Assembly (NCBI GenBank): GCA_015680685.1
Contig: MNCI01003374.1
Location: 62,001-126,000, forward strand
DNA from: Gnetum montanum
Taxonomy: Eukaryota > Plantae > Gnetophyta
Length of the DNA: 64,000 bases
Reading direction: 5' to 3'
Positions 48,200 through 62,040 of the stretch are shown here, piece by piece (the stretch's first letter is position 1; every line of letters starts with the position of its first letter). The notes below the pieces were generated by a model. The model was not told the DNA's origin, did no database searches, and worked only from the letters and a program-made list of their open reading frames with translations. Both the position numbers and the translations under genes were made by a program.

Positions 48200-51100
48200 A
48201 AAAGACAGAAATGAAAAAGCTTGTAACCTTTGTTTTGTTGGGATAGAAGAAAAAGAAAATGAAAACCTACTTTAAGAAATGATAACTGTGATAAATGATA
48301 TTATGCATATTGAGCTGCCTAAAATAAAGGATGCACTTTATTTTGGGCCTAACAATGATAAACTTAGGCACATTGTTGTGAAATTTCATGATACAGATGA
48401 TAGATCCAAAGTTTGGAAACATCATAGTTAGTTAAAGGATTATAAAATTTGGATTAATGCAGATCTCACCAAAAGGGAACTATGGAGAAAGTGAAAGAAG
48501 CAAGAGTAGAAGGTTTTGTAGCATTTTTAGACGTAAGAGGTAATGCAATAATTACCAAAATTAAATAGTCAAAAAACTCTACAAAGAAGATATAAAATAT
48601 CTTCATTGTGGATTTTTAAACATTGATGAATCAATAATGGATAAAGTGAAGGTGTTATATAATATACTGTTCTTTAATAAATTTAACATTATTGGTATCT
48701 TTGAAACATAGGAAATTGAAGACTCTCTAGAAATTCTTGTTCCAAATTTTTATATTTTATCTTTTCTTTACAAAAGAAATGTAGATCATGGAAGACCTTT
48801 TGGAGGTTTGGCTATTTTAATTTGAAATTCTCTTCATAAGCAAGCCCAAATAGAAAATGCAGATAAATATATTCAGTATGTTTGGCTAAAATATGACAAC
48901 AAAAATCTTTTTTCTTTTTAGCTTTTTGCTACTTTGCACATAGAAAAGCTACTATCTATGAACAAGAATGCTTATCACGGAATTTTCCCTTTCAATCCCT
49001 TAGCATGGATATTACTGCTTTTGCTCAAAGAGGAAAAATTTACATATGTAGTGACTTTAATGCTAGAATTAGTTCTGAGTAGATCCTTATTAATTACTAG
49101 AATCCTCAAGGCTTTTTAAAATATGAAAACAGGGTAGAATAGAATCAATGCTCTGAAGATAAACACTTTAATTGGAAGAGAACATGTGTTAAAATGGGGA
49201 CAATGGCTATATCTATTGATTCTAAATGACATCAATAAATATTCAAAATCACGTGGCTTTACTTTTGCAGGGCCACAAGGTAGCTCCAGTATTGATTTTG
49301 TTCTTTCTAGCCTTGACAATGTTATCAACATCAAATGTTTTGAAGTAAATTAAAAAATAATTGAATCTTACGATCACCCTTTATACTTTATGTTATTAAT
49401 AGATATGCAACATATTAGATGTTTAGGAGGCAAAAGCATTTCAGAATAATTGCAAAAATGAGGAGGATTTCCAAAATAAAATCTAAAAGATTTGGAATCC
49501 AAGTGTGAGTCTTATAAAAACTCTAATTATAGCTATCCTAAATATTTATAAAGGTCAAAATATAAACAATCAACAATGGTTTGATGAAAAATGGAAGACA
49601 ACTAGAATTTTATTGAAGACCTATAAGTCACTAGAGACTACAAGTCATATAAAAATTCGATTTAAACTAAGAAGAGGGAATTTGTTGGATAGAGACATAA
49701 TATTTTATTAGAAATGATAAAGAAAGATCCTAACTATTTTTGTCATTTATTTTAAAGCAAACGAAGAACAAACTATGCTATCTTGCTCAAAGATATTGAA
49801 ATTTTTTATCAAGCTTTGTTTCATAGCAATGATAAAATAGAAGATTTTCAGAACAATGGTAATTGTTCATTTCTTTTGATGACATAATGCAGGGTATAAA
49901 AAAATTGATACCAAGAACAATTGCTAATATAAATAATTTAGATGAAGAAATGCTTAAATGGGCAAAGCTACTAGTATGGAATACTATCTGGAAGAAGTTA
50001 AATTTGCTTGTGCAAGTAGGGTTAGAAAAGGAATGGTGCATCAATGAAGCAGTTATGTTTTTTGAAAGGAGACAAAAAGATTTAAATATTTATAGCTTGA
50101 TTGTAATTAACAATATCTTTGCTAAGCTTTTGGGTACTATTCTAGAATCTATGCTTGGAAGATGGCCTGAAGAAAATCAAACGCATGCAATTTCCTGGCC
50201 AGGATTTAGGCAACATCATTCTACTATAAATTATCTTACCACTTGAAAATATCTTATGATAGATCAAAAGGTCCACACAAGAAAACTTTTATCTGCTTTG
50301 TAGATTTTTCTAAGGCCTATGATTCTATCATTTGAAGCAAGTTATGGAGGTGCTTGAAAAATTTAGAAGTTGCCAACATTGTTATCAGCTATCCAAAAAC
50401 TTTACAAAGAGGAATGCATTCAGTTTACAAATGGGTAAGAAAGAGTTTTATTTAATAGTTTTGTTGGTGTTAAACAGGATGTCCTCTTTCTCCTACTGAT
50501 TTGAGCTTTTTATTGAAAAATTTGAAGAGTGGACACATAAAATGCTAACTCCTTTTGCAATTTCAATTGGAAGCGGTCTTGTCACATTCTTTCTCTATGC
50601 TAATAGTGTTGCCTTAATTTCAAGTTCAATGAAAGGACTGCAACAAATGCCTAATCCTCTTAATGACTTTTGCTGACATTTAGGAATGAAAGTTAATGTC
50701 TAAAAAATAGAAATTGTGGTTTGTGGTATTCAAAATAAGCTGTACAATTTTACTATAGGACATGAATACGTGAACAAAAATTTTTCTTACAAATATCTTG
50801 GCCTAGAATGCTCTTGCAATCACAAATGGGATTAGTCCGTTATTCAAAGAGTTAGAAGTGGTACAGAATCCTTATTTTCTTTAAAAAGCAAATATAAGAA
50901 GGAATCTATTTCAGCTTGGGATATCCGAAAATAACTTTATCATGCCATTGGGTAACCTACTATTCTCTGTGGATGTGTTGTATTGTATGGGGTCCTACTA
51001 TATCAAATAAGTATTGGAAACAAATAGAACAAATATAAAACCTTTTATTACTCAATGAATTTAAAGTGAAAATATAGACACAATGCGATATTATGCTTTT

Positions 51101-52950: not shown

Positions 52951-53099
52951 CATGTGGTCTTCTGCCCCCACGGAACCTGGGAACCCCAGCTGGGCCAATT
53001 ACTCCCCAATCCAGGCACCGCCTCAGCCAGCGGCCTAGCCAAGGGGGAGCACCACGAGCTGCCCCCCCACAGGGGGGGGGGGGGGGGGGGGGCAGCCCC

Positions 53100-53700
53100 C
53101 CACCCCCCGCCAGAGCGCCAAAATCAGACCAGAGTGCCGGTCGCGCCGTTTGAGCCTGAGCGTCTCTTTAAAGAAGCGGGGGAGGTTGACGGGGGTACCC
53201 AACCTGAGGCAACGCAGGAAGGCAAAGTGAAGGCCCTGCAGCTTGGAAGCGTTGCCAGACTGGACGAAGTAGCGCTCAATCAAATCAGTTCCCCTGGCCC
53301 ATAAGCACGGCAAAGAGGACTTGGGGACTTGCCGACTCTGGGTCTGAGGGACGGGCCCATCAAAAAACAGCTCTGCGTCCTCTAGCCCTCGGGTAGAGGG
53401 CAAGAGGATTTCCCCAGCGATTGGGGCCCCCAGACAGCTGGCAATCAAGGATTCGGCGACCCAAATTTCGCGCCCAGGAAAAAGGGTACGGTCGTTGACC
53501 CAGTTGGAGAAAAACGCATCATCTGCCAGATCAGGGTCCCCCACCAGCCGCTGTAGCGGCTCTGACCAGCCGCACTGGGTCACCAATCGCCAAAGCACCT
53601 CGTCAACCTGGAACGCGGCGCAGTCCGGTTCAAAAGTGGGCGCCTTTCCCATGGTAACCTCGATTTCTTTCCACGCTGCGACAGCCTGGGAGACCAAACG
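53100..53700 (-). CDS. LINE-J1 extension: plant-transposon-protein/PMD-like helical domain, in frame with the ORF2 WxxWKxxN motif
   Basis: CGWSEPLQ...AFFSNW...GREIWVAESLIASCLGAP...FLRCLRLGTPVNLPRFF within ORF 53035-53973. Confidence 0.6.
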
Positions 53701-56700
53701 CGGCAGAGGGGGGCACTGCTGCTGTTGAAAAACGGCGTTGTTTGGTGCCTTCCACACTACCCATAAAAGTAGCATGGCTAGGGAGTCGCCCGTGAGGCGT
53801 CTCGGGGGGGCATAGTCGCCGCGTGCCACGTGGCGCGCATGCAGGGGCACTCCGCCGCGAAGTGCTGCGTTGTTTCCTCCTCGGCGCCGCATGTAGGACA
53901 CGTCGCGGAACTTAGGATCCCACGCCGATGCAGTAGGGCCCGTATTGGCAACGCATCGTTTTTCAGGAGCCACAGGAAAAATTTAATTTTTTCGGGCAGG
54001 CATCCCTGCCATATCTGCCGCCAGCCGTCCATCCGAGGGTACTTGNCAAGGTCTGCATTGTGTGAGCATGCCGGTAGAGCCCCTGCCATGGCCTCGAATC
54101 TTGCGCACCCGAAACCCAAGGCAGATATTTGGTCTTCATGATTCGGATCCAAGGGATCGGTTCTACCTGGGGGCGCGAAAATCGGAGTAGTAACCGTTGT
54201 TGCCCGATCATCAGCTCGTCTTCGAAGGAGGTAACACCCAAGCCCCCAGCACTGCGGGGGCGCATGACCTGTTCCCAGCAGACTAGATGAATTCTGCGCC
54301 CCCCCCTTGCCCCCCTTCCAAATGAAGGTACGGACGAGAGAATTAACCGCAGAAATGATCGCATTCGGAGGCGTGGCCATGGTCGCCACAAACCTCGCGA
54401 TTGCCGTGAGGATTCCAGTGGCCACCAACAAGCGCCCTTTGCGACTGAGGAATCTAGTCGCCCAATGGCTCATTCTTCTCTCGATTTTTCCGAGCAGCGG
54501 GCCCCACACCGTAGTCCGTCCCCATCTGAAAAGGGGGATACCTAGATATGTGTCGTTGTACGTGCCTGGCAGGATATTCAGGATGTGTATCGCCCGGTTC
54601 TTAACCTCAGCATCCGCATTGAAGAAGTGGGCGGAGGATTTGGTTCGATTGATTTCCAGTCCCACCTCGGCCGCGAGACGAGACAAGGCAACGTTAATGC
54701 ACCGTGCCTGTGGGACCGTTGCTCTACTAAGCAACATCGTGTCGTCCGCATAGTGTTCGGTTCGGCATGCCACTCCGGCAATGTCTAGATCGTCCACCCC
54801 CGAGGTGCTGCAGTATTGCTGCATTAAGTCCATGGCGATGATGAAAAGGAGGGGTGAGAGCAGGTCCCCTTGCCTCAACCCCCGCCCAGGGGAGGAGAGG
54901 CCCCATAAACGCCCCCCCACATCAAAGGAGAAACCTGCTGAGGACTGCATGTGGATGCATAAGCGGATGAACTGCAAATCAAACCCTTTCTGTAACATGA
55001 TGGACTGCAAGGCCTCCCAGCTGAGTGTGTCATAAGCCTTGGTGATGTCAAGTTTGAGGCAAAGCCCAGGAAAGCTCGTATTCCGAAGCGAATGAAACAC
55101 CTCCTGCATGAGGAGGATTGGGTCCTGAATTGCCCGTCCTTGCATGAACCCCGCCTGGTTGGTCCCCACCAGCTTGGGCATGACCGGCATAAGCCGATTC
55201 ACTAGCAGCTTGGAGAAGATCCTGATAAGGACATTGCAGACCCCAATGGGGCGGAAATGCTCCGGGCGGTGTGCGTCCGATTGCTTTGGGATGCAGACAA
55301 TGCGGGAGCAGTTGAGTTCCCTTCGAACTTGTCTCCTGGCCAACATAAGATTGAACGCATCTAGAATATTGGGCCCCACAATATCTATGAAAGTTTTAAA
55401 AAACTCAAGGCTCCAACCGTCAGGACCTGGCGCTTTGCCACCAGGCATGCTAGTGATCGTGGCTGTGAGCTCCGACCATGAGAAGGGGGCCAACAGTCGG
55501 ACGTTGTCGTGCTCGCTCAGCACATGCTGCACGGGAACCAAGATGGGCATGGTGGGGCGCCTGGCCCAAATCCCGCGCCAGTATTGCATCAGCTCGTGCG
55601 CAATCTGTTGTGGATCATCAGTAGTTTCGCCGGCCTAATTGCGGAGGCAACGGGGTTGATAGTCCCCCCGGGTTTTGGCCATAGCGAAGAAGAATCTGGT
55701 CTGTCGGTCCCCCTCCCTAATCCACCGGACTCGGGAACGTTGTCACCAGTACGTCTCCTCTTCGAGGTCAAGGGATTGGAGTTGCCGCAACGTGTGCAGC
55801 TCCTCCACGTGTAAATCCTCACCTGCTTCCTGTCGGGCCTGGATCTGGCCAAGCTGGGCACGGAGCTTCCGTATGCCAGTTCGGAAGGAGAACTTTACCT
55901 CCACAGGGAGGGCCCTGATGGCCCACTTCATCCGAAGCAAGGCACCTTTGAGGAAATCCCGTGGGTCCCCCCGGCCGGGTCGGTAGTTAGCCCAAATCTC
56001 CTCCACCATCGGCCTCAGCCATAGCTTGGCTAACCAGGCAACCTCGAAGCGGAAGGGATGAGGGGCCCTAGGCTTATCCGGCCCAATTAGGCAGGTCAGC
56101 GAACGATGATCGGAAGCCACCCTTTCCTGGCCCACCACACGGATGGAGGAGTGGAGCAGGAGATCAGCGCTAACCCAAACCCGATCAATCCGGGTGAGAA
56201 CCCGGTCCGGTCCCTTCCTCCGATTACTTCACGTGAAGCGGCAGTTCTCAATAGGCAAGTCCACGAGGGAGAAGGTGGCCAGGAAAGCCTGGAATTCCGC
56301 AGCCCCCTGCGGCGGGCGGGCACCCCCTCGGACTTCTCCCAAGGGTGAAGGCGCTGGTTGAAGTCCCCAACCACCAGCCACGACCGATGGTCGGGGACCA
56401 GCGTCGTCACCCGGTTCAGTTCGCGCAGCCGCTCCCCCCACTGCTAGGCGCCATAGAAATTAGTCAACCAGATCCCGTGCACAGGGACCTGAACAGTGAT
56501 GGCCCACTGCGATGCATCAAGGAGGTGCATGACACAGCGGGCAAGAATGGCGAGTCCGCCGGCCCGACCCCAGCAGGGGTGCGTGTAGGTAGTCCAGCCC
56601 TCCCACTGGAGGAAGTGCGACTCCGTGGGCTGTAGTTTGGTTTCCTGGAGACAAACAATGTCACAGTCTTCATCTCGGATAATTCTGCGCAGGGTGTTTC

Positions 56701-56748
56701 TTTTGTAGGGGGTACCCTGTCCCCTGCAGTTCCAGCTGAACACCTTCA
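53700..56748 (-). pseudogene. LINE-J1 ORF2 core: APE endonuclease, RT, zf-RVT (a few frameshifts and stops)
   Basis: MKVFSWNCRG, CLQETK, GDFN, SDH; KAPGPDG, FRPIGVCN, KLDITKAYD, GLRQGDLLSP, HYADD, YLGIPL; CPTCGAEEETTQHFAAEC; WVVWKAPNNAVF. Confidence 0.95.
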
Positions 56749-57199
56749 TGTATGACCAGAGGTGCGGCGTTGGTAGACCTCCCGCAAGGTCTGTTGCTGC
56801 CCCAAGTCGATATCGCGCTGGGTTTGTTTGTTTCTGGTACTGGTCTCGGTTGGTCGGCCCGGGCGGTTTTCGCCGGCTCGCACCACTGGGCTGCACCCTG
56901 GTTAATTTAATTGACCAGTCTTTCCCTTAAAAAAATACATAAAATCATGTTCACAAAACATCAAAGATGTGCAAACATGAATTTTTATTAGTGTATGTAC
57001 ACCGCAAGATCATCATAAACCAAAAGGTTGAAGATGATGTTACGAGTATCCTTTGCCAAAGAAATGAAGGTACGAGTTGGTGTAGAAAAAAGTTAGGATA
57101 CTGGTTCCTAAAAAGGAAGAGAAGAAAAATACATGAAATCATGTGCATGACAAAATTTAAAATGTAGTCGTAAGCAAATACTTATGAAACTGAAGAGAA

Positions 57200-60100
57200 G
57201 TAAGAGGTCATGGGCTTAGAATGGTGGGAGAAGATGATGAGCATGGTAGCAGCAGAGATGGGAGTGGAGATGTAGATGTTCTCTACAATGGTGGACCTTG
57301 GATTTACTAGAAAATGAGAGGCAGAGGAGGTAACAAGAGTTGTGTTGGTGCTGCTAAGCATGCCATCTTGGGGGCTACTAGCTGGGTTGGCCTTGATGAG
57401 GGTTTTGGATTGTTGACATTGATGAGTGCAGGATTCGTTGGTTAGGGCCTACAAGGTACAAGTGCTTGGCACCTTAGGATGGACAACATCAAAGAGGTTA
57501 GCAGGTCCTAGGGAGTGATGTGCCTTAAGTTGCATGCTCTCGCTTTGGAGGGTTTGCACATGTTTGAATGCAGCCTCTTCAGCAAGTTTGTTTTAGCTGG
57601 TGTGTAGTTGTGATTGGAACTTGTTTGGTGTTGGGTGATCTCCTCATGGGGAGTTGCAGATCTAGAGCTTTGTTCACTGATAGGGGAGCTTATGCTTGTC
57701 GTGTTTCCGAAGTTGGGGGCTAGAGATTAGGTCCTATTGGGGGACCCCTAGTTCTTTGGCACCAAGGGCTTGGCCTTGATGCCTTGGAGGCTAGGTGCCC
57801 ATCATGCATTGGTGTGGGTTAGGATGTTAGGAGTCCCTTGGTATTTATGAACCACAAACTTCTTGCACACGATCATGGGGTTTTTCGGTGAGTTCATCTT
57901 GTTTGACAAATTCAAAAAAACAAAAGAGTGCATGGATATGTTAGATTTTGTGTTTGGCGGTCCCTCTTCGCAGATGACCTCCTCAAAGAGGTCACTCTGG
58001 GTCTGCCAACAGGGGAAGAAATTCTTGCGATCAAGTACGAGAACATCCATTTGTTGGCATCAATGCCCTCAGGCTTTGTGATACATGGCCTATGGGTTTT
58101 GCGGCAAAGGAAATCATACCATGGAAGAATGCTACCTATGTCACAGAGGAACACATTGACATCAGAAGGAGTTTGGTGACCTCTCCCTCTCCTTGCACCT
58201 TTTTTTTAGGGCGGGGGTGGGGGGCGTGGGAATAGGTCTAGAGATGAGGCTGAAGAAAACCCAACAAAAAACTGACTTAGGGACCTGGATGATCCTAAAA
58301 GGGGTATACAAGAAAAGGGCTACCAGTAGGCCATGAATATCATCTCATGGAACTGCAGGGAACAAGGTACCCTCTACAAAAGAGGTACCTTGAAGGAATT
58401 GATGCGAGTTGGTAACTCTGACGTTGTGTGCCTATAGGAGACCAAGCTCCAAGTCACACAATGTCAGGTTTTAGAATAGCAAGGATGGAATGCCATTTTT
58501 GTGGTATCTTGTGGGAAGCCGGGGGGTGGGGGGTGTTTGGTGACTATTTCTAAGATCCTAATGCACCTGTTTGAATAATCCTAGTTGAGCATCACCACCT
58601 TCATGCCTTTGTAGAGACTTTAGCTAACAAACTTCTACAGGCCACATGATCTAGAAGCTAGACTAAAGGAGCTACACAAGATTGTGGGACAAATCCCTAA
58701 TAGCTTGGATCATGATTGGTGATTTCAATCAACGGTCATTCTTGTGGGAAAAGATTGGGGGAGTCTCAACCCCACCCCCAAGTAGCCAAGAATCCTTGTT
58801 CTACCTCCAAAACTTTGAACTGGTTGATGTGGAGGTTAAAGGATGTTGTTACACCTGGCACAATAGATGGAATGTCAAAGATTGACAAAGTTTGGGTCAG
58901 TTTGACATTGTTTCTTACAAATGAAATTCATGTCATTGAACTTGAAAGAAGGGCCTTTGGTCATAGAGTGCTTCTTTGCTCCATTCATACACCTGAAAAG
59001 TTGGGGCCAAGACTTTTCAGACTGGAAAGGTCATGGTTAAACAAACCTTGGCTTGCCCACCTCGTTTCAGATATCTAGAAGAGATACTTGTCTCAGACGG
59101 ATCCTAGAGATTTCCTCAAAAAGGGACTTATTGCCCTCAAAAAGAGGATACATGAACAACAAAAGGGAGATAAATATGCTTTCAAAAAGCATTGTGCTTG
59201 CTTGAAAGAAAGATTGTTGGAGATCTGAGCTAGCTAGGAGCTAGGGCAATCCTCAGATGAGGAAGAGCATGATCTCCTCTTCCAACTACATCTCTCGAAG
59301 GAAGAAGAGTAGTACTGGAAGAAACGAGCACAAATGAGATGGCTACATGATGGAGATAGGAATGCTAAGTTGTTCTTTGTTGCAGCTAAAACGAACAAGG
59401 AAGGTAAAAGAATCCATAGCATCACGCAAGGGGAAAGCACTGTGCATGATGAGCAAGTCATTGCCCATGCTATGCAACAATACTGGTCTGGCATTTGGTT
59501 TGGGGGAGATCCCTCTCCTAGTTCCATCCACATCTAGAGGGTCATTCAAGTGCAAGAAAATGAAAGGTTGATTGCACCTATCACTAAGCAAGAGCTTTCT
59601 GAGGTCTTTAGATCTATGAGAGCTAATAGGGCCCCAGGTTCAGAGAGATGGGTGGAAGTTTTTAGACACTTCTTCAACATTCTTGGCAACAACATTGTTG
59701 ATGCTTTCAATCTCATGCTTAGATGGGGACATGTTAGACATGAAATAAATTTCTTTAGAATTGTGTTGATACCAAAAATTACCCACCCCATTGAACCAGC
59801 TCACTTTAGGCCAATAGGGGTTTGTAATACGTTGCTTAGGTTGTTTACAAAGATTCGTATTGCTAGACTACAACCACTCATGCCCTCCATAGTGGGCTTT
59901 TGGCAAATTGGATTTATCAAGGACATGTACATTCAGGACCAAATTCTATTATTGCAAGAGATCATGCACTCTATGCAGAAAGCAAAATTCCTAGGTATGT
60001 GCATCAAGCTTGATATTGCTAAGGGCTAAGATAAGGTCTACTAAGGTCCACTTAACGACATTATGCTATGAAAAGGGCTCCACCCAAAATTTGTTGATCT

Positions 60101-62040
60101 ATGCATTAACCTTTAGGCTTTAGGGGCCTACTCTTTTGATATTAATGGACGTCTTTGGGGATTTTCTTCCCTCTGTAGGGGTTTATGCCAAGGAGACCCC
60201 CTTTGACTATATCTCTTTATCATCACCATGGACACTATGAATACATATTGTAAGGCTGAAGGCATTTGCCATTTGAGCATTGAGGGGGTCACGTGTATTG
60301 TTGAACACTATGCAGATGATAGGATTTTAGTCATGTGGTCGATGGCTCCATAGGTGGAAGTAGTGTCTAGAGCCCTCCAGAAAATGTCCAAAGAGATTAG
60401 ACTTACTATGAATTGGGGAAAATCCATGGCTCATTTCTTTTGCACGGACACAATGGTGAAATGAAGGATATGTAGGATGTTGGGGATCCAACAAGGGTCT
60501 TTGTAGGACTCATATTTAGAAGTGCCCATGTTTGCATGAAATTGCAAGGCCCCTTGGACAGTGCTGATATAGAGAATCCAAACTAGAGTGCAACACTAGG
60601 CTTCCAGAATCTTGACCTAGAAGGGCAGAATACTGTTGGCTTCTTCTATCCTATTAGAAATGGGAAAATTCATAGCTTTGGTTGATTATCTTGGTATCCC
60701 GACTATGGGGGAGACAGTGTTGCCCTTAGGGCAAGGGCTTCAAGATGCTGAGAGCTTCTTCCTTGGATTGGTCCCAAAAATCAAGAGCAGCTAAGTCCCC
60801 AAGTTGGCCTTACCTTTGCTTTGGTAGGATGCTATGGAGCTTGTGGAACTTTTCTTCTTCTAGTTGGGTAACATGTGAAAGCTCTAGGGAGTGCACTTTA
60901 CCTTCCTCTGTTGCATGCAGCTAGGCAAGCCACCTAATCTTCCAAAATTTTTCTTGGTTGCCCTTCATTGGAGAAGAAGGGGACACCACTTTGGCTTGAG
61001 CTTGGCCTTATGGAAAGTAGTGCGGCTTGTGGAGGCACCATTGGCTAAGCCCACTTTTGTCACCATGCCATATACTAAATGTAGGCTATCATAGGAGGGA
61101 GAGTCCTCCTCCTCTATGCAAGCCATCTTGGAAGGAGGAGCTGATGGTGGTAGGGGAAGGTTTGGATTGGTATGTCGCTACCACATATTGACCCTTCTCC
61201 TTGTAGGAGTAGGTCTAGACCCTCGAGGATCATATTCGTAGAGAGTTGCAACGAAAGTTTGAAGTTGACCTCCATAGGGACACTATTGAGGTTGACGCCA
61301 AAGTCAGGGTAGAGGAACAAGCATGATGGGAAGTTGAGCTACAAAGATGGGAAGAGGAGGCCAAGGCTAAGTGATGGGAGGAAGAACAATAGCTTAGAGA
61401 GGTGGCTGCGAATGAGCAGCATCAAAAGGAGCTACAAGACGTTGCATTTAGAAGTGAGATGGAGGACCAGCTCTGGGAGCAAATTAGGGAGTACTTGCAC
61501 TAGGAGGAGTTGGAGTGGCTGTGAAGAGAGGAAGAGGAGGAAGAGCAGCGTGTCAGGGCCCTTTTGGAGGAACAACAAATTAAAAGGAACCATGATGCTA
61601 CACACAAAGCCAATGCCCAATGATGGTTTTGCATGGGAAGATGCCCATGTATGGTCATGAGAATAAGTCACAATGTCTTGTGGGCTAGGCTGAGGAGATG
61701 TATTAGGACTACTTCCGCTAAGTTTCACTTTGAGGCCACCATTGAATCTGCCAAAAACAACATGAAGAGTAGTGTAAGGAATTTCAGGAGGCTGCAATGT
61801 TTGTTGCCTTGAAACACTATAGGGCAGTCCTGGATGCGGTACACGCCCAGGAACAGGCACGGTGCCCCTGTACTAGGCTGCCAAGGTCCATCGGATGCCA
61901 TCATTCACAAGGACCAAGAAGGGTTGCCCGATGTGGGTGTGGATAGCCTAGTGATGGGGCAATTTTTGTTTTTTGTCAAGCACCCCTTGTTTGCTGTCCT
62001 GTTCGTTTTTGTTTGCTGACTGCTGGAATTAAAGTTAATC
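57200..62040 (+). mobile_element. LINE-J2: older decayed relative of LINE-J1, with ORF1, ORF2 and the same C-terminal module
   Basis: ORF1 DUF4283-like VWVRMLGVPWYL...GYVRFCV (about 57810-58050); ORF2 ATG 58333 MNIISWNCR; RT FRPIGVCN, KLDIAK, HYADD; extension 60680-61025; coiled coil 61280-61600; J-like 61642-61835. Both ends approximate. Confidence 0.88.

Follow-up and report, generated by a model that had tools for sequence, protein, structure and literature searches.

A 64,000 nucleotide (nt) window of Gnetum montanum DNA (contig MNCI01003374.1, positions 62,001 to 126,000 of the forward strand) was found to contain two copies of long interspersed nuclear elements (LINEs), J1 on the minus strand and J2 on the plus strand, lying head to head with about 1.4 kb between them. 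J2 is very likely an ancient, dead L1-type LINE, whose second open reading frame (ORF2) carried a C-terminal extension made of an accessory domain (called the module below), a coiled coil and a complete J-domain, i.e. the unit that switches on Hsp70 chaperones. This reading is drawn from sequence comparisons, in the first place between J2 and J1. The DNA of the window is AT-rich and eukaryotic (GC 0.38), with several short runs of N. J1 has a GC content of 0.595 and a CpG observed/expected ratio of 0.74, for flanks at 32-38% GC and a CpG ratio of ~0.2, whereas J2 has a GC content of 0.44 and a CpG ratio of 0.19, which is the flank level. From its GC and CpG contrast with the surrounding DNA, J1 appears to have inserted much more recently than J2. 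The coordinates of all features are collected in Table 1.

J1 was the reference for the comparison. Its core was recognised by Pfam as an endonuclease (PF03372, Exo_endo_phos, 56,444-56,896, E 1.6e-10), a reverse transcriptase (RT; PF00078, RVT_1, E 8.6e-27) and a zf-RVT domain (PF13966, E 2.1e-16). An earlier reading of this DNA, made from the sequence alone and without searches (the sequence-only reading), had described J2 as a second, diverged copy with the same module, and all the strings it quoted are present where it had placed them. The module strings YLGIPTMGETVLPLGQGLQDAESFF, HFTFLCCMQLGKPPNLPKFF and HFGLSLALW are found at 60,687-61,016, in the frame starting at 60,600, and the coiled coil followed by NAQ*WFCMGRCPCMVMRISHNVLWARLRRCIRTTSAKFHFE is read in the frame starting at 60,601. 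By tblastx, the two RTs share 46% amino acid (aa) identity over 342 aa (349 bits), the modules 51% over 111 aa without a gap (127 bits), and the segment covering the coiled coil and the N-terminal half of the J-domain (J N-half) 40% over 105 aa (79 bits). No nucleotide match was detected between the two tails with blastn (word size 9, E 1e-5). The sole nucleotide match between J1 and J2 is 104 nt long and 75% identical, and falls in the endonuclease region (J2 58,348-58,451). A frameshift-aware alignment of the J1 protein with the J2 DNA was unbroken between IASCLGAPIAGE / LVDYLGIPTMGE and RYHPDA / KFHFEA, the coiled coil included, and the best kept part of the distal tail was the J N-half, with 18 of 34 residues identical. 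J2 is therefore a second copy with the same module, as proposed. The two copies had also been called subfamilies; with 46% identity in the RT they are, by their sequences, separate lineages instead.

To see how the tails had diverged, identity was counted by codon position in the ungapped alignments of 111 codons (module) and 105 codons (coiled coil and J N-half), and positions 1+2 were compared with position 3 by Fisher's test. For the module, identities were.65/.67/.33 at positions 1, 2 and 3 (146/222 vs 37/111, p 2.8e-8), and for the RT.55/.71/.34 (p 5e-19). The coiled coil and J N-half gave.50/.57/.39 (113/210 vs 41/105, p 0.017). Third positions are near saturation in the tail and in the RT (0.33-0.39), and divergence spared positions 1+2 in all three segments, which is not the neutral nucleotide decay that the sequence-only reading had named as the outcome opposed to its own proposal. 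We therefore infer that the tail diverged under protein constraint (purifying selection). As the tails of J1 and J2 are homologous and constrained, the extension would have been present in their common ancestor, and kept as long as both lineages were active.

J2 itself is heavily damaged, with at least 13 stops and 3 frameshifts in its tail, and ~950 nt lost internally. Its endonuclease piece 58,682-58,885, taken alone, gave no Pfam match, and the open piece of its RT (59,550-60,029) matched PF00078 with an E of 7.1e-7 and 29.6 bits, exactly at the cut-off. The internal deletion was recognised from the tblastx segments, which step from 54,384 to 53,433 in J1 while J2 moves only from 60,677 to 60,690. 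The J1 interval missing from J2 (54,384-53,433) holds the C-terminal end of the RT, the zf-RVT domain and the first third of the module. The zf-RVT domain is thus absent from J2, its interval being deleted, but J1 and L002, a metagenome contig described below, both have PF13966 at this place, and for this reason J2 is considered as a deleted member rather than a different kind of element. Downstream, no clear poly-A or element end was seen for J2, the GC content dropping to background past ~62,000, and no similarity was found between the 3′ untranslated regions (UTRs) of J1 and J2.

The jump of ~951 nt in J1 homology at 60,677/60,690 could also be read as the border of a composite, in which a tail-only, 5′-truncated LINE copy lies against a 3′-truncated one, with no internal deletion, and 5′ truncation is indeed common in LINEs. 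We consider such a composite unlikely. The two halves of J2 agree in orientation, order and reading frame, they are alike in GC content, in CpG decay (0.19 vs 0.22) and in divergence from J1 (46% vs 51% and 40%), and neither a poly-A nor a target duplication is visible at the junction. Even if J2 were composite, its tail would still be a diverged LINE tail, since J1 and L002 join this tail to RT and zf-RVT.

A search with the module alignment brought out a third lineage, on two near-identical metagenome contigs, Ga0115844_100297 (L001, 1-13,513) and Ga0068627_1000112 (L002, 1-13,874), which are probably host plant DNA within the environmental sample. Their DNA is AT-rich and plant-like, and the LINE on them, itself AT-rich and decayed, has an RT (35-40% identical to that of J1), a zf-RVT domain and the module, as well as a zinc-knuckle ORF resembling ORF1. 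In L002, zf-RVT (PF13966, E 1.7e-10) is followed in the same frame by the whole module, to which the J2 module is 33% identical over 63 aa. At the level of sequence, this lineage supports the view that the module is an old part of the LINE lineage. Together with the excess of identity at codon positions 1+2 and the occurrence of the module in both the J1 and J2 lineages, it agrees with what had been proposed from the sequence alone, namely that the module is old and selected, and not a chance capture.

Common descent of the whole element is not the only way for several lineages to have the same tail, as template switching or recombination could have moved it between them. LINEs are known to have exchanged domains in a modular way, for instance the RNase H of plant L1 elements, and the module is slightly better kept than the RT (51% vs 46%). 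Nevertheless, the divergences of tail and RT are of the same order (51% and 40% for the tail, 46% for the RT), with position 3 saturated in both, and for L002 the distance is about the same whether taken from the RT or from the module. Nothing therefore suggests a recent transfer, and we regard a moved tail as quite improbable.

The presence of a J-domain at the end of the extension was first apparent in J1. Its N-half aligns with positions 2-32 of the 63 of PF00226 (E 0.0082, 16.7 bits). This is under the gathering cut-off of 27.8 because the domain is truncated by an assembly gap: the readable part ends with ...GRCPYFVLGISCESSWAELRRHIHRTSARYHPDAGFSQE, and is followed by 141 N. The gap is followed by a 3′ UTR of ~135 nt, which ends in nine A (A9, 52,140-52,132). 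In a single BLASTP comparison with residues 7-35 of E. coli DnaJ, the J1 N-half was 38% identical (E 1e-7), and ~35 solved J-domains matched it in one register, each weakly (E 0.07-2). A search for homologous proteins with the J1 tail, either whole or limited to residues 98-141, gave no match.

In J2, both halves of the domain were looked for with a model that combines E. coli DnaJ with the J-domains of 66 distinct enterobacterial DnaJ sequences. Stretches were scored without gaps in fixed columns of this model, and ranked against a null made of all positions of the window in six frames. The J2 N-half (29 codons, 61,648-61,734, columns 7-35) scored 6.6 bits, a value reached by 6 of 127,828 positions, that of J1 among them. 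Past the HFE tripeptide, CKEFQEAAMFVALKHYRAVLD (21 codons, 61,773-61,835, columns 47-67) scored 11.0 bits, rank 3 of 127,876, and with the preceding codons, EE*CKEFQEAAMFVALKHYRAVLD (24 codons, columns 44-67) scored 11.9 bits, rank 2 of 127,858. The halves lie next to each other, in the order expected of a J-domain. Two 21-mers of the window outscore the 21-codon J2 stretch, FRSCQHCYQLSKNFTKRNAFS and FKNIKEDVHKGTEKQQDVNKT, at 50,362 (+) and 42,947 (-) respectively. Neither has a J N-half upstream, and they were taken as the chance tail of the distribution.

The helix III-IV stretch of J2 is identical to E. coli DnaJ 47-67 at 7 of 21 residues (K, E, E, A and R, A, D), ungapped, and to CbpA at 7 of 21 as well, this comparison being made in the register proper to CbpA. 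Scored with BLOSUM62, it was equalled by 5 window positions for DnaJ 47-67, and by 11 for CbpA. DjlA was unusable as a comparator, since its loop is long and it lacks the helix IV motif. From the E codon of HFE to the C of CKEF (61,773), the loop measures 38 nt, i.e. 12 codons and 2 nt, compared to 11 residues in DnaJ and 10 in CbpA, so that the J2 loop is one or two residues longer and contains one frameshift. When the sequence past HFE was read in frame, without this frameshift, no J signal was obtained (-1.8 bits). The spacing found with the frameshift fits that expected for a J-domain (F-x-x-I-x-x-A-Y-x-x-L ... R-x-x-Y-D, ~8-14 residues past HPD). In dinucleotide shuffles of the J2 3′ region, counting 31 placements (27-57 nt past the E codon, any frame), the score was matched once in 20,000 (P = 5e-5). 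Finally, joining the J1 N-half to the J2 C-terminal piece, with an X at the joint, raised the local score in the enterobacterial DnaJ model from 15.1 to 17.5 bits.

Several observations weigh against a complete J-domain in this family. The J2 pieces, taken alone, gave no J-domain match in Pfam (E<=1), by phmmer against the PDB, or by BLASTP with E. coli DnaJ, and hmmsearch --max on all 1,495 stop-to-stop pieces of the window reported a J-domain in J1 only. No J-domain here attains the Pfam gathering score. For the C-terminal half of J2, the support is an ungapped positional test, and the local hidden Markov model (HMM) score of 61,773-61,946 is 0.0 bits. The tripeptide of J2 is HFE and not HPD. 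The C-terminal half of J1 lies behind the gap, so that helices III-IV lack a comparison internal to the family, and the J2 lineage is represented by a single copy. In the third lineage, the remnant of the J N-half in L002 is weak (GKCR*IAILHSCSSSWG*AIRGINSITPSRYF, ~340 nt downstream of the module, tblastn E 0.2), and a helix III-IV signal was not found there, the best score being 1.6 bits. At most, the sequence of L001 and L002 hints at a J-domain in their lineage.

The sharpest form of this doubt is that the helix III-IV match of J2 arose by chance, in which case the part of the tail common to J1 and J2 would comprise the module and the coiled coil, and stop at the first half of the J-domain. 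The failure of Pfam, PDB phmmer and BLASTP to match 61,773-61,946, and its local HMM score of 0.0 bits, are what would be expected then, and the match does require a frameshift and cross a stop. Yet chance would have to account for rank 2-3 among ~128,000 positions and for a P of 5e-5 over 31 placements that had been fixed beforehand, as well as for the same 7/21 identities with CbpA and for a loop length within the known J-domain range. We hold it to be very unlikely. The alignment of EE*CKEFQEAAMFVALKHYRAVLD with helices III-IV, proposed by the sequence-only reading, is thus weak by ordinary searches but stands by position.

We conclude that J2, judged by these positional scores, retains remnants of a whole J-domain, and that the J-domain of the family thus had a second half. 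It had been said that J2 supplies the half hidden in J1. This is right in that J2 shows that the J-domain of the lineage had a second half, but J2 cannot literally supply the hidden residues of J1. The origin given for HFE (cac ttt gag, 61,726-61,734), which is the positional equivalent of HPD, was decay of HP(D/E) by C>T changes. It is also only partly retained. The P>F replacement needs two C>T changes, which is plausible in J2, where CpG has decayed to background. The D>E replacement, on the other hand, needs a T>G transversion, or else an ancestral E.

A last alternative is that the J-like stretch is a fragment of a host DnaJ gene, transduced with the 3′ flank of one element and without a role in the LINE. 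LINEs do transduce 3′ flanks. However, two lineages have the stretch, with order and frame context unchanged between them, and the J1-J2 comparison already contradicts such an origin. It is located upstream of the 3′ UTR and poly-A of J1, and it diverged under coding constraint. This makes a transduced fragment extremely unlikely. More generally, the tail being present in a second lineage, with a protein-like divergence and a complete J-domain, a chance capture is very unlikely, and this suggests that the tail mattered for retrotransposition. J2 thus serves as an evolutionary control that a single copy could not provide, by placing the J-domain tail in a second lineage, and adds a corroborating data point, from an independent lineage, for a family of J-domain LINEs.

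We then considered the module. In J1 and L002 it continues the frame in which ORF2 ends, which means a fusion rather than a separate ORF3. An exhaustive profile search gave seven relatives, all weak (E 5e-7 to 5e-4): three Ginkgo proteins and one Taxus protein, uncharacterised, two proteins from ENA assemblies, and the L002 ORF. No match was obtained when viral and genome contig collections were scanned with the module alignment. The start of the module, MGKAPTFEP, aligns to the N-terminus of the standalone relatives, several of which begin with MGGxP..EP (Ginkgo MGGEP.TTEP), and this suggests that the LINE captured a once separate gene. The accessory domain is probably of the 'putative plant transposon protein' kind. 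The J1 module itself matched no Pfam family at E<=1. One relative from an ENA assembly (P0006) had a weak match to PF20167 (Transposase_32; E 0.037, 14.3 bits vs a cut-off of 45), and an Atlas feature search with the module returned ATHILA and Transposase_32 clusters (0.89-0.90), which is a lead only.

An AlphaFold2 (AF2) model of the module (53,038-53,700, minus strand), built on 9 sequences, had a pLDDT of 71.7. Its sole standout structural match, by VIA-align, was VANC21 (9lnk_A; Z 6.0 over 182 residues, root-mean-square deviation 4.3), the next one having a Z of 2.9. Against the PDB, neither Foldseek with the model nor a profile search with the alignment gave a match. VANC21 is the sequence-specific anti-silencing protein of VANDAL21. 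VANC has been reported to be structurally homologous to MAIN (PMC13547354). On the basis of the model, we take it as a lead that the LINE may carry a domain of the chromatin or anti-silencing type, a Z of 6.0 being below the level that settles a shared fold.

How does this element compare to known systems? Its core of PF03372, PF00078 and PF13966, and the poly-A end of J1, are those of plant L1-clade LINEs. The difference lies past the zinc finger, where an accessory domain of ~190 aa, a coiled coil and a J-domain are found. The RNase H of plant L1 elements is a precedent for a domain added at the C-terminus of ORF2. With the J-domains of the DnaJ/Hsp40 family (PF00226), J1 shares helices I-II and HPD in the DnaJ register, and in J2 what is left of helices I-II and of helices III-IV is ordered and spaced as in these J-domains. 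Here, however, the domain would stand at the C-terminus of a retrotransposon polyprotein and not in a cellular co-chaperone, and the G/F and zinc-finger regions of type I/II DnaJ are absent. Among the plant transposable element accessory proteins, PF20167 Transposase_32, the ATHILA ORF-1 protein (PF03078) and the plant mobile domain of VANC21/MAIN are weak leads for the module, which differs from them by its fusion to a LINE ORF2 and by having no Pfam match of its own. The closest functional analogy may be the polyomavirus T-antigen, a parasite-encoded protein whose N-terminal J-domain recruits host Hsc70: in both cases a selfish element would have its own J-domain for host Hsp70. The element type and the host are unrelated, and no homology is claimed beyond the J fold. 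A full-text search of open-access papers found no LINE or non-LTR (long terminal repeat) element with a J or DnaJ domain. LINEs depend on host chaperones, and to our knowledge a chaperone recruiter encoded by a LINE has not been described.

The way in which the tail might have worked can be sketched as follows. As long as an element was active, HPD would let its J-domain dock onto host Hsp70 and raise the ATPase activity of this chaperone, as J-domains in general do. For this recruitment step, argued by analogy, we see the chances as evenly balanced. Once recruited, Hsp70 would help in cis to fold, assemble or remodel the new ORF2 protein or its ribonucleoprotein (RNP). The ORF2 protein would form multimers by means of its coiled coil, and a possible role of the accessory domain is binding to nucleic acid or chromatin. 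After insertion, J2 very probably underwent cytosine deamination down to the background CpG level. Taken as a whole, we tentatively propose, at somewhat less than even confidence, that an old L1 lineage of gymnosperm-like genomes had an ORF2 extension combining its own Hsp70 co-chaperone, a coiled coil and a VANC/MAIN-like domain, and that this extension was selected. If this is true, a retrotransposon would bring a chaperone recruiter, and possibly a chromatin or anti-silencing module, to its own RNP. The tail domains offer concrete targets for tests, i.e. stimulation of the Hsp70 ATPase, and binding of nucleic acid or chromatin by the accessory domain.

Table 1. Features of the two LINE copies, in window coordinates (minus strand features are given from high to low).
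Feature	Position	Strand	Remarks
J1 comparison LINE copy	56,900-52,132	-	endonuclease, RT, zf-RVT, module, coiled coil, J N-half, 141-N gap, 3′ UTR, A9
J1 accessory module	53,652-53,101	-	inside an open stretch of ~310 aa
J1 module, part alignable to J2	53,433-53,101	-	tblastx
J1 coiled-coil region	52,845-52,540	-	
J1 coiled coil and J N-half, segment alignable to J2	52,746-52,417	-	
J1 HPD	52,443-52,435	-	intact
J1 141-N gap	52,416-52,276		six codons past HPD
J2 L1-type LINE copy	58,304 to ~61,950	+	old, CpG-depleted
J2 decayed apurinic-type endonuclease	58,304-59,090	+	33-48% aa identity to J1 56,778-55,983 (tblastx)
J2 RT	59,439-60,677	+	12 stops in 342 aligned codons
J2 internal-deletion junction	60,670-60,690	+	~951 nt missing relative to J1; same frame on both sides
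J2 module, C-terminal two thirds (YLGIP...HFGLSLALW)	60,680-61,022	+	5 stops
J2 linker, poorly conserved	61,023-61,215	+	two frameshifts, ~61,150 and 61,216 (frameshift-aware alignment to J1 protein)
J2 coiled-coil-like charged stretch (E/K/R/Q rich)	61,216-61,635	+	several stops; aligns to J1 52,845-52,540
J2 J-domain helices I-II, ending with HFE	61,636-61,734	+	18/34 identical to J1 GRCPYFVLGIS...RYHPDA
J2 loop past HFE	61,735-61,763	+	holds a frameshift, net 2 nt beyond whole codons (three-frame translation)
J2 helices III-IV remnant, EE*CKEFQEAAMFVALKHYRAVLD	61,764-61,835	+	back in the frame starting at 60,600
J2 remaining open frame	61,836-61,946	+	stop tag at 61,944-61,946

Some minor observations concern the spacer and the state of J1. 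The spacer between the two copies (56,900-58,304) has a GC content of 0.45, similar to that of J2, and its part 57,928-58,179 resembles by eye a decayed zinc-knuckle region of a LINE ORF1, without Pfam support. In J1, the reading frame is shifted within the endonuclease region, and again within zf-RVT near 53,780-53,970, and the linker (53,037-52,860) contains three in-frame stops. Directly past the J1 module, at 53,070-53,095 on the minus strand, there is a long C homopolymer, read as GGCPPPPPPPV, which could be a sequencing or assembly slip and may explain part of the local frame break.

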